Sequence record: NC_048048.2
Length of the DNA: 64,000 bases
Strand: one strand, 5' to 3'
The position numbers were made by a program, and so were the translations under genes. How positions within the stretch are numbered: the stretch's first letter is position 1; every line of letters starts with the position of its first letter. Positions 24,198 to 31,992 of this stretch are shown here, piece by piece. The notes beneath the pieces were generated by a model. That model saw only the letters and a list, made by a program, of their open reading frames with translations. It did not search any database and was not told the DNA's origin.

Positions 24198-24444
24198 GTC
24201 TTCAGCTTAGCGTCCAACGCTTCTGTGTCAAGAAACGCGACACGAAGAAAGTGCGCTTGACGCATAGCCTAAGCTCGGCCATCCTCCCCTGGCATCGACA
24301 ACCCTGTCTCTAGCACGTCAGGACCGGATTGCGAGCGTGGGGCGCTTCGGCGCGCTGGACTTCGGCGGAGCGCCCCTCGCTGACAAAATTAGCGTCCCGA
24401 CGACACAATGCTTGACACGGAAAACGAGGTAGGTTACAGGTCAG

Positions 24445-24840
24445 GAGTTGTCGGCTGAAGGGCCTTCGGGACCTGGATGACGGAATACACGGAGACTGTT
24501 CTGGACCGGGGTGCGATTCCCCGCGCCTCCACCACCAAGTCTCCCGGCCGGTCCCCACCCAGGGACCTGGGCGTCGCCTTCAGCGACGGCGCCCGATCTG
24601 AACGGCGCGGGAGACTTTGTTATGGGGGCGATCAGCATCGACAGGCAGGGTAAGTAGAAGACGCGACACGGCATGGCTGCCGGTTCCTTCGGGAGCGCTA
24701 GGCCGACTTTGACAAATGTCAACGCTGCTAACGACAACGACGTCGTGGTTTCGACCATGACCTCGGTCAAGCTGGCCGCTTAACGGCTCGGGGTTCAGAA
24801 GGCGCCTTTTCACCCAATGGCCTTCAGCTTGCCCTAAGGG
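24445..24840 (+). ncRNA. ssrA: circularly permuted (two-piece) tmRNA; tag ANDNDVVVSTMTSVKLAA
   Basis: T-arm and CGCCTCC-ACCA (24507-24534) precede the GGGGGCG 5' acceptor strand (24624) giving G3.U70; tag ORF 24727-24783; intervening segment closes a 10-bp stem; outer ends approximate. Confidence 0.92.
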
Positions 24841-24879
24841 GCTCAGAGGACAGGCGGCGCAAGCCGCGCGATCAACACC

Positions 24880-25032
24880 AGGGGGCGGCCTGGGTCCCGA
24901 AACCGCCCACCCTCCTGCTTTCGCAGGCGGGATCAAAGGGTCGGCCTCAAAATAGGCGATCTGTCGGAAGAAACCCCGTTTCGCCGGCCTTTTGATCCCG
25001 TCTACGAAAGCTGGAGGTTCGGCGCCGCCCTC
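24880..25032 (+). ncRNA. candidate long-hairpin ncRNA (6S-like architecture)
   Basis: About 35-bp interrupted stem (24910-24944 with 24984-25018), internal bubble and outer stem. Confidence 0.5.
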
Positions 25033-25055
25033 GGGAGGCATCGAGCTTTCACTGA

Positions 25056-25132
25056 TGCGGGGTGGAGCAGTCCGGTAGCTCGTCTGGCTCATAACCAGAA
25101 GGTCGAGGGTTCAAATCCCTCCCCCGCACCCA
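25056..25132 (+). tRNA. tRNA-Met(CAT), initiator-like body
   Basis: Cloverleaf; loop CTCATAA; A11-U24, G2-C71, C3-G70; encoded CCA. Confidence 0.92.
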
Positions 25133-25139
25133 GTTTTCT

Positions 25140-25478
25140 GTGCTATACAGGAAAGCACACAAGGCCGCTGAACCGGCGTCTTCGGACGTCGATGAAAGGT
25201 CTAACCTCGCGTCCTTCCCTGGTCAGTAGGGGAGGGGCAGTCGGAGCAGATAAGGCGGGCGCGCTGCGGCCGAGATAAGGGCTTCGATTAGTCGGCCGGC
25301 GGGCTAGGGGGTTGAGAGGCCAGATGTCTCCTGCCGGAGAGACGCTGGCCGACCTACGATCTGTTTTCCAGGCCTCATGCTCGGCCCCGATCACACGGGG
25401 TCAGGGACTGAGGCTAGGTCCCGGCGAGACGCCTGTAGCAGGCTCCCAAGCTAGGGCATGCGGCCTGGAAACCAGATC
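25140..25478 (+). ncRNA. candidate multi-hairpin ncRNA between tRNAs
   Basis: 17-bp closing stem (25358-25374 with 25462-25478) enclosing 3-4 hairpins; further hairpins and a cUUCGg loop upstream. Confidence 0.5.
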
Positions 25479-25480
25479 GG

Positions 25481-25557
25481 GGTGGTATAGCTCAGCCCGG
25501 TAGAGCGGGAGGCTCATTCCCTCCTTGTCCTAGGTTCAAATCCTAGTGCCACCTCCA
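25481..25557 (+). tRNA. tRNA with CAT anticodon (Met/Ile2?), atypical U37 and U73
   Basis: Cloverleaf: GGTGGTA/TGCCACC acceptor, GGAGG-CTCATTC-CCTCC, TTCAAAT loop, CCA. Confidence 0.85.
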
Positions 25558-25711: not shown

Positions 25712-25788
25712 GATGCCGTGGACTGAATGGTTTAGGCGCGAGACTGCAAATCTCGATCATGCGGGTTCGAGCCCCGTCGGCATCTCCA
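25712..25788 (+). tRNA. tRNA-Cys(GCA)
   Basis: GATGCCG/CGGCATC acceptor, CGAGA-CTGCAAA-TCTCG, U73, CCA. Confidence 0.92.
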
Positions 25789-31263: not shown

Positions 31264-31992
31264 ATGCGCCAAGCCGCCGATATCGTCCACCTCAACCAGT
31301 TGCGGGTCCACGCCCGTCCGTCGACCTTGGCGACCGCGCGCCGCGCGCCGGCCAAGACCAAGAAGGGCGTCCTGCACCGCGCCAAAATCCTCACCCCCGC
31401 CCAGTTCCAGGAACTGCGCGGGCTGGTCGAGGAAGATAGCAAGACGCCTGAGCGTGATCTGGTCGGCATCCTCCTGTCCTTCTACTGCGGCCTGCGCGCC
31501 CAGGAGATCGCCTACCTGGAGTGGGATCGCCACATCCTCGACGCCAAGGGCCGCTTCCGCACCACCGTCCTGGAGGACGGCACGGTCCAGCACACGATCT
31601 TCATCTCGGGCGACATTGGCAAGCGGGGGCGCGAGCGCACCCTGCCGATCCCGCCCCAGATGGTCCAGGCGTTGAAGGACCTGCGCGCCCTGCGCAAGAC
31701 CGATGTCTACGTTTTCCATCGCCTGGACTGCCCGCCGGGCTACGGCCCGCTGCTGGCCAACTCGGTGGCCAAGTGGTTCGGCCGCATCTATGAGCGCTAC
31801 AACTACGACGGCTGCTCCAGCCACAGCGGTCGGCGCACCTTCGTCACTCAGGCCGCGCGCAAGATGCAGTTCGCCGGCTGCTCGCTGCGTGACGTCCAGA
31901 TCATGGCCGGCCACGCCAGCCTCGCCACCACCCAGGCCTATATCGAGCCTTCCGAACAGCAAGGCGCGCTGGTATCGAGCCTCTACGACTAA
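31264..31992 (+). CDS. tyrosine recombinase (catalytic domain only)
   Basis: GLRAQEI (R), HSGRRTF (HxxR), AGHASLATTQAY (H, Y). Confidence 0.9.
   Translation: MRQAADIVHLNQLRVHARPSTLATARRAPAKTKKGVLHRAKILTPAQFQELRGLVEEDSKTPERDLVGILLSFYCGLRAQEIAYLEWDRHILDAKGRFRTTVLEDGTVQHTIFISGDIGKRGRERTLPIPPQMVQALKDLRALRKTDVYVFHRLDCPPGYGPLLANSVAKWFGRIYERYNYDGCSSHSGRRTFVTQAARKMQFAGCSLRDVQIMAGHASLATTQAYIEPSEQQGALVSSLYD

Follow-up and report, generated by a model that had tools for sequence, protein, structure and literature searches.

The window analysed here is a stretch of 64,000 nucleotides (nt) from record NC_048048.2; it shows 100% identity to MH588547.2, the 317,489-bp genome of the Caulobacter phage CcrSC (Bertelyvirus SC), and its first base is base 124,001 of that record. 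The interval that a first-pass annotation had flagged at 24445-24840 is a real two-piece transfer-messenger RNA (tmRNA, ssrA) gene that is unannotated in GenBank, where the CcrSC record has tRNA-fMet, tRNA-Met and tRNA-Cys just downstream and a blank at the tmRNA locus. ARAGORN places a permuted tmRNA at 24442-24874 (+) with the tag VNAANDNDVVVSTMTSVKLAA and a stop, and the Rfam model tmRNA_permuted (RF04321, gathering score 47 bits) aligns end to end (positions 1-213) with 24478-24783, scoring 75.8 bits (E = 9.6e-13). The permuted order can also be read directly, as acceptor piece, spacer and coding piece, the two pieces being joined by helix P2, and all three lines thus agree with the earlier proposal of a phage-encoded two-piece tmRNA in the alphaproteobacterial arrangement. 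It is the one tmRNA in the whole CcrSC genome, which has 30 tRNA genes. A protein-coding reading was set aside: three antisense open reading frames (ORFs) of 82, 109 and 170 residues cross the locus, and none has a Pfam or PHROGs match. The existence of the gene is not new, because Buchholz et al. (2022; PMC9004378) had included CcrSC in their Table S1; the present analysis adds that it is conserved throughout the subfamily, revises the tag and the 3' boundary, identifies the probable Val resume codon and shows that the spacer is structured and that the tRNA-like domain is of the host type. The parts of the gene, including the candidate pseudoknot 1 (PK1) and an element resembling pseudoknot 2 (PK2), are as follows.

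24445-24534 (+): acceptor piece, about 88-90 nt, from ARAGORN, Rfam and alignment, with the 5' end placed from the putative promoter
24458-24474 (+): 5' UUCG hairpin of the acceptor piece
24496-24498 and 24501-24503 (+): P2a strands in the acceptor piece, CUG and CUG
24507-24523 (+): T-arm with the loop UGCGAUU
24524-24530 (+): acceptor 3' strand CGCCUCC, followed by A73 at 24531 and CCA at 24532-24534
24535-24623 (+): intervening spacer, 89 nt, presumably excised
24624-24912 (+): coding piece, about 289 nt, the exact 3' end being an estimate
24624-24630 (+): acceptor 5' strand GGGGGCG, seven pairs with CGCCUCC, including G3.U70
24631-24641 (+): D-loop analogue AUCAGCAUCGA
24642-24644 and 24646-24648 (+): P2a strands in the coding piece, CAG and CAG
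24669-24705 (+): candidate PK1, with a UUCG hairpin inserted at 24683-24696
24718-24783 (+): tag reading frame, from GUC at 24718-24720 to the stop UAA at 24781-24783, from ARAGORN and translation
24775-24787 (+): stop-codon hairpin
about 24790-24825 (+): PK2-like element
24831-24842 (+): small hairpin
24854-24867 (+): GNRA hairpin, capped by GCAA or GUAA
24878-24908 (+): terminal pseudoknot CCAGG/CCUGG plus GGGCGG/CCGCCC, then ACCC

The acceptor stem is of the alanine type described in the first-pass annotation, with seven pairs, G3.U70, a discriminator A and an encoded CCA. The T-arm has a 5-bp stem and a 7-nt loop, and the D-loop analogue is the same as that of the host. The D-loop AUCAGCAUCGAC together with the T-loop UGCGAUU was found in 53 of 54 genomes with the Caulobacter tag and in none of the 32 other alphaproteobacterial tmRNAs sampled, and the tRNA-like domain of the phage is therefore of the host type. 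Elsewhere the gene has diverged far from that of the host: BLAST against two Caulobacter genomes aligned just two short patches (34 and 24 nt), and no exact match exceeds 16 nt, the longest lying in the D-loop. In the coding piece, the candidate PK1 was assigned by eye (stem 1 CGGC/GCCG, stem 2 UGGCU/GGCCG), and the corresponding stem 2 in Colossus, UGACC/GGUCA, differs by one compensatory change; stem 2 of PK2 is likewise compensatory between CcrSC (GAAGGC/GCCUUC) and BL9 (GGAGGC/GUCUCC). The 3' end of the coding piece likely lies at about 24912, because the last pseudoknot of the host tmRNA has the same layout as the segment 24878-24908. The earlier limit of 24840 omits approximately 70 nt of conserved coding-piece RNA, including the GNRA hairpin and this terminal pseudoknot, and no second copy of these 3'-end motifs was found elsewhere in the CcrSC genome.

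Comparison among relatives supports the pairing of the two pieces. In a set of 13 sequences, comprising 12 phage or viral-contig genes and the host gene, every acceptor, T-stem and proximal P2a position forms a standard pair in all 13, and the third acceptor pair is G.U throughout. Acceptor pair 5:68 is G-C in some sequences and C-G in others, four pair types occur at the closing position of the T-stem, and P2a is seen as CUG/CAG, CAA/UUG and CCG/CGG, the proximal and distal triplets being paired in 13/13 with at least three pair types (the distal ones by eye and with a 1-nt register shift). These compensatory changes in the acceptor stem, T-stem and P2a indicate that the acceptor and coding pieces are built to pair together. 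The spacer is structured as well, with a minimum free energy of -50 kcal/mol (z = -5.25) and a fold comprising a three-way junction, a conserved CAGCGA loop and a AUCUGAACGG stretch; RNAalifold on six phage genes reported 10 pairs in which both partners had changed, most of them in the stem that closes the spacer, and the U at position -1 of the RNase P site is invariant. Between CcrSC and its relative RB23, identity is 92% in the acceptor piece, 65% in the spacer (with the fold kept), 85% in the 5' coding part through PK1, 95.5% in the tag frame, 98.5% over the 129 nt 3' of the stop codon and 70% in the hairpin downstream of the gene. Conserved pieces around a diverged spacer are the pattern expected if the pieces mature and the spacer is removed, and the high identity 3' of the stop shows that the coding piece extends beyond both 24840 and the 24874 of ARAGORN.

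Translation most likely resumes at GUC (24718), which would give the tag (A)VNAANDNDVVVSTMTSVKLAA with 21 encoded residues compared with 13 in the host. The trinucleotide GUC preceded directly by AAAU is invariant in 12/12 genes of the subfamily Dolichocephalovirinae and aligns with AAAU followed by GCG AAC GAU AAC in the host, and in Colossus and PW GUC is followed directly by AAC GAC AAC, which agrees with the host except that GUC stands for GCG. A weight matrix built from 39 distinct cellular alphaproteobacterial upstream contexts (median 9.0 bits, minimum -0.6) gives the CcrSC GUC context 8.2 bits and the next three in-frame codons -11.0, -2.9 and -3.1, and GUC is the top-scoring candidate in all 12 phages. 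GUC is favoured because its context is both conserved and high-scoring. The first-pass annotation had chosen GCU at 24727, which is probably three codons late, as RB23 has UCG at this place and the context scores -3.1 bits; Colossus and PW have no GCN codon whatever before NDN. The tag frame and the SVKLAA C-terminus that it gave are correct, as is its statement that the phage tag is longer than and unlike that of the host, and the host tag it quoted, ANDNFAEEFAVAA, is exact in 55 Caulobacter/Caulobacteraceae genomes. In every phage examined the frame is open and ends in [L/I]AA and a stop that, like that of the host, sits in the loop of a hairpin, and the phage tags are mosaic with NDN kept in all of them.

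The gene is not peculiar to CcrSC. The same locus, with the TTGACA promoter, the tmRNA, a long hairpin and tRNA-fMet, is found in 12/12 Dolichocephalovirinae genomes examined, which cover four named genera and two phages without an assigned genus. Besides CcrSC, the carriers are its Bertelyvirus relatives CcrBL9, RB23 and BL47, Colossus and PW (Colossusvirus), Rogue, BL10 and RBC8 (Poindextervirus or close relatives), phiCbK and Magneto (Shapirovirus), BL57 and the Brevundimonas phage Bajun. BLAST located it in 11 further Bertelyvirus and 31 phiCbK-type records, and the tmRNA is annotated in that of Bajun only. In two relatives a 'hypothetical protein' coding sequence (CDS) lies over the tmRNA (gp217c of BL47, L005:1877-2002; BL64, PV745554.1, at about 103087-103577), and such features are probably spurious calls.

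Related genes also occur in uncultivated viral contigs. A scan of IMG/VR with the D-loop motif returned 21 loci, of which approximately 13 were chance matches inside coding sequence and 7 true permuted tmRNAs. Contigs L068, L070, L073, L085 and L083 carry Caulobacter-type permuted tmRNAs with 79-84-nt spacers; the tags of the contigs are VNDNHYQSHALAA, VNDNHFQPSALAA (in three contigs) and ANDNQVVVAQELPLAA, the first two being GUG-NDN tags, and the spacer of L083 has the motif AUCUGAA common to the Bertelyvirus and Colossusvirus genes. Separately, the alphaproteobacterial genome G114 holds a second, divergent permuted tmRNA (L135:4910-5289, minus strand, 84 bits, tag ANDNSPVAMAA, 80-nt spacer), which stands beside a tRNA-Pro/Met/Trp cluster and looks like a prophage-borne copy.

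The surroundings of the gene on the plus strand suggest that it is transcribed from its own promoter together with several tRNAs:

24412-24440 (+): putative promoter, with -35 TTGACA at 24412-24417, a 17-nt spacer and the -10-like TACAGG at 24435-24440
25056-25132 (+): tRNA-fMet
25481-25557 (+): tRNA-Met
25712-25788 (+): tRNA-Cys

A TTGACA, a 17-18-nt spacer and a TAnnnn hexamer lie just upstream of the tmRNA in 12/12 phage genes, and in CcrSC this promoter would have the host RNA polymerase start at about 24446-24448. A generic sigma-70 scan proposed CTGACA-18-CACAAT (24380-24409), which was set aside as the conserved TTGACA is preferred on comparative grounds. All related phages examined keep the order tmRNA, tRNA-fMet, tRNA-Met, and the tmRNA and the three downstream tRNAs probably share one transcription unit. 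A very stable hairpin of about 105 nt (24912-25016) begins directly at the 3' end of the tmRNA, and the 145-nt segment that holds it (24911-25055) has a folding energy of -80 kcal/mol. The foot of the hairpin (CUUUCGCAGGCGGG / CCCGUCUnCGAAAG) and the apical UCUGUCGG are conserved in all Caulobacter phages examined while the middle diverges, and it occurs once in the CcrSC genome; it looks more like an element for RNase III-type processing or a stalk protecting the 3' end than like a 6S-like RNA. Between tRNA-fMet and tRNA-Met lies a GC-rich non-coding gap of roughly 350 nt (25133-25480), present also in CcrBL9 and RB23, in which no Rfam family reaches its gathering score. Colossus, PW, Rogue and BL10 each have a 'tRNA-Cys' of unusual length (85-89 nt) adjoining the tmRNA (L006:2258-2344, L007:2262-2346, L008:2128-2216 and L086:88-176), which in Rogue and BL10 is encoded on the other strand and scores poorly with Rfam (35.8 bits for Rogue); the downstream tRNA-Cys of CcrSC is a normal one of 77 nt.

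We think it probable, from sequence comparison, that the gene is a functional two-piece tmRNA of a virulent phage that gives the phage extra ribosome rescue capacity under its own control. No match to SmpB (PF01668) was obtained in the phage genome at E <= 1, in a search whose control finds the SmpB of Caulobacter vibrioides; the RNA must therefore use the SmpB, alanyl-tRNA synthetase (AlaRS) and RNase P of the host. Phage tmRNAs usually come without a phage SmpB, and this lack is compatible with membership in the tmRNA family. In the mechanism we propose, the host RNA polymerase would transcribe the gene early from the TTGACA-type promoter, the tmRNA being first in a unit with the long hairpin, tRNA-fMet, tRNA-Met and tRNA-Cys. 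Host RNase P would cleave before G24624 and the 3' end would be trimmed to the CCA ending at 24534, so that the 89-nt spacer leaves while the acceptor piece of about 90 nt and the coding piece of about 290 nt stay joined through the acceptor stem and helix P2. AlaRS would add alanine, SmpB and EF-Tu of the host would bring the RNA to stalled ribosomes, and translation would resume at GUC, adding (A)VNAANDNDVVVSTMTSVKLAA, whose internal AANDN and terminal LAA would direct the tagged product to the host ClpXP. The net benefit would be that the phage itself controls additional ribosome rescue and amino-acid recycling. Such capacity may matter because the tmRNA and SmpB of the host are regulated in the cell cycle. 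Of the roles suggested in the first-pass annotation, the rescue of ribosomes halted on mRNA that host defences have cut may or may not apply, an altered adaptor or protease routing is allowed by the sequence, and a resistance to the turnover of host tmRNA is speculative.

Several observations weigh against this reading. Of the searches that the first-pass annotation had named, ARAGORN is positive, whereas the alphaproteobacterial model RF01849 (alpha_tmRNA) is not, since it aligns the tRNA-like domain only, locally, at 49.0 bits, just short of its cut-off of 50 bits, and it is the broader RF04321 that passes. The RF04321 score of the phage gene exceeds just 2 of 148 cellular alphaproteobacterial matches, 143 of which score at least 100 bits (one of the 148, drawn from the 151-genome sample, comes from the unpublished genome G042, a single ordinary data point). 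Distal P2 has two candidate strands, UGACG at 24478-24482 with an A.A mismatch and UGUCG at 24449-24453 with perfect pairing. The generic sigma-70 scan does not call the TTGACA promoter, because its -10 lacks the final T. A search of RNA runs returned three wastewater libraries only, each with 5-7% of the sampled words, and their reads on the locus gave a few contigs of 150-176 nt with the depth mostly on the conserved tRNA-fMet, which is no evidence of transcription or processing. SmpB also falls in early S phase, and extra tmRNA alone might therefore not help. Finally, Caulobacter SspB or ClpX may or may not accept the phage tag.

Among the alternatives, the one that survives best places the selected value in the tag itself, which would alter handling by SspB, ClpXP, ClpAP or Lon so that tagged products are degraded faster, more slowly or by another route; we regard it as unlikely, although several features of the tag fit it. 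The AANDN region binds SspB and the terminal LAA binds ClpX, as established in E. coli and Caulobacter. In E. coli, work by Flynn in 2001 and Hersch in 2004 reportedly found that tag residues 1-4 bind SspB and that spacer length tunes delivery. The phage tag has Val rather than Ala as its second residue, and 13 residues instead of 5 separate NDN from LAA. GUC or GUG, both coding for Val, is the apparent resume codon in 12/12 Dolichocephalovirinae genes and in contigs L068, L070, L073 and L085, whereas in a class-wide sample of 34 ARAGORN-called cellular alphaproteobacterial tags 33 are Ala-first and 33 have 10-16 residues, the CcrSC tag being longer than 33 of the 34. The host tag is also invariant in 55 species while the phage tags are diverse and mosaic. 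However, NDN and the hydrophobic-Ala-Ala end are kept and CcrSC has an internal AANDN, so that recognition may proceed in the standard way; variation among A, S, D and V in the residue that precedes NDN may be neutral; and cellular tags of 20 and 22 residues exist. At two cellular alphaproteobacterial loci, L140 (genome G139) and L127, the long tag contains a second, internal NDN block (ANDNVAFVAANDNTVVEVAVAA and ANENRIAMNDNYSMEALVAA, respectively), and phages are therefore not alone in having long or duplicated tags. A cellular source for the tag was sought with the pattern NDN-[DEHQ]-VV-[AV] in 401 alphaproteobacterial genomes and rejected, with 10 matches against about 10 in the control; just two matches lay within a tmRNA, with the tag ANDNHVVALAA.

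A broader and, in our view, doubtful version holds that these genes form an old, vertically inherited phage tmRNA lineage that goes beyond extra rescue, with a Val resume codon, lengthened mosaic tags that alter SspB/ClpXP handling in Caulobacter and a released spacer, conserved and structured (CAGCGA loop, AUCUGAACGG), that acts as a small RNA or protein-binding element. If true, trans-translation in infected cells would be uncoupled from the cell-cycle control of the host. We consider it very improbable that the RNA is mainly a decoy that titrates SmpB, AlaRS or EF-Tu of the host, whose trans-translation it would thereby block. The tRNA-like domain is its best-conserved and most host-like part, the phage has no SmpB of its own, and a molecule resembling the RNA of phage DS6A, which consists of a tRNA-like domain only, strongly inhibits tmRNA (PMC4131195; PMC11915505). 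A pure SmpB decoy would nevertheless have no need of the tag frame, stop hairpin, resume context, candidate PK1 and 3' pseudoknots, which are kept in every phage examined, and their conservation makes it unlikely. That the locus is a captured piece of host ssrA serving as a present or past integration site without RNA function is hardly credible: tmRNA genes commonly serve as integration sites and CcrSC has, some 7 kb downstream, a tyrosine recombinase (window 31390-31956; PF00589 at 61.9 bits), but the similarity to host ssrA consists of the two short patches described above, with the longest match in the D-loop and not at the 3' end of the gene, the gene is complete with its own putative promoter and compensatory changes across the phage lineages compared, and phages of the CcrSC type are isolated as lytic plaque-formers. 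The recombinase ORF itself (31264-31992, plus strand, 242 residues) belongs to a phage regarded as virulent, where its product might resolve concatemers or integrate.

The system lends itself to experiment. To our knowledge, nobody has shown the role of a phage tmRNA in infection. The two-piece tmRNA, SmpB, SspB, ClpXP and RNase R of Caulobacter are well studied, and ssrA is dispensable there. An RNA-seq time course of phiCbK infection has been published (PMC10688885). A tractable host, a dispensable ssrA and existing RNA-seq together make the role of the phage tmRNA directly testable. The results also bear on annotation, as about 40 GenBank records of phiCbK-like phages are without a tmRNA annotation and a few have a spurious CDS over the gene.

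Phage tmRNAs as such are well documented. Buchholz et al. (2022; PMC9004378) counted 53 two-piece molecules among 133 distinct phage tmRNA structures, and their Table S1 gives CcrSC, CcrBL9, CcrPW, phiCbK, Karma, Magneto and Swift as 'Permuted', while their main text discusses no tag or structure of a Caulobacter phage; the tmRNA database of 2025 contains 79 unique phage sequences (PMC11915505). No tmRNA is mentioned in the original genome paper on phiCbK, the genome papers of Lacusarx and Shash report one, and the GenBank record of Bajun annotates one. In the published literature we found no description of the tag or structure of these genes, nor any test of a phage tmRNA. The marine phages (Melnitz, the pelagiphages HTVC008M and Mosig, and cyanophages) are alike in carrying a permuted ssrA adjoining an early promoter, for which ribosome rescue and amino-acid recycling were proposed (Buchholz et al., 2022; PMC9004378). 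They differ in hosts and tags, and Melnitz and Mosig have a glutamine riboswitch, of which none is listed for the Caulobacter phages in Table S1. The mycobacteriophage tmRNAs (Bxz1-type, cluster C) and the DS6A RNA are also phage ssrA genes without a reported phage smpB (PMC4131195), but they are one-piece standard genes, in DS6A without a tag frame, and have actinobacterial hosts.

Close parallels are the tmRNAs of the other phiCbK-like phages, which share the locus, the promoter type, the permuted layout, the AAAU and GUC context, the downstream long hairpin and tRNA-fMet, and a long structured spacer, which in this group has 81-118 nt. Their tags differ, being for example VAANDNDVVAFASAREAIAA in phiCbK, VAANDNAPFAVREAIAA in Rogue and Bajun and VNDNDAPVMEQLLAA in Colossus. 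The tag is longest in the Bertelyvirus genes (CcrSC, BL9, RB23 and BL47), which also carry a 5' extension with the UUCG hairpin and more RNA past the stop, and RF01849 matches over its full length in PW, Colossus and Bajun and not in CcrSC.

Keiler, Shapiro and Williams are said to have described the two-piece tmRNA of Caulobacter crescentus in 2000. The SsrA of this host (C. crescentus, or vibrioides) has in common with the phage gene the permuted order, the G3.U70 stem, the D-loop analogue AUCAGCAUCGAC, the T-loop UGCGAUU, a 5' hairpin before P2, a PK1 (a candidate one in the phage), a stop in a hairpin loop, a 3'-terminal pseudoknot, the NDN core and a hydrophobic-Ala-Ala end. RNase R degrades the Caulobacter tmRNA (PMC12320835). 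CcrSC differs from it in an extra hairpin within the candidate PK1 and about 80 nt more RNA 3' of the tag, in the resume codon (GUC, Val, rather than GCG, Ala) and in a tag ending in LAA rather than VAA, and the host gene scores higher with both Rfam models (233.7 versus 49 bits, a local match, with RF01849; 126.6 versus 75.8 with RF04321). The spacer is 28-33 nt in Caulobacter SsrA and 89 nt in CcrSC, which is unusual yet not unique, because the spacers of other alphaproteobacteria span 5-133 nt.

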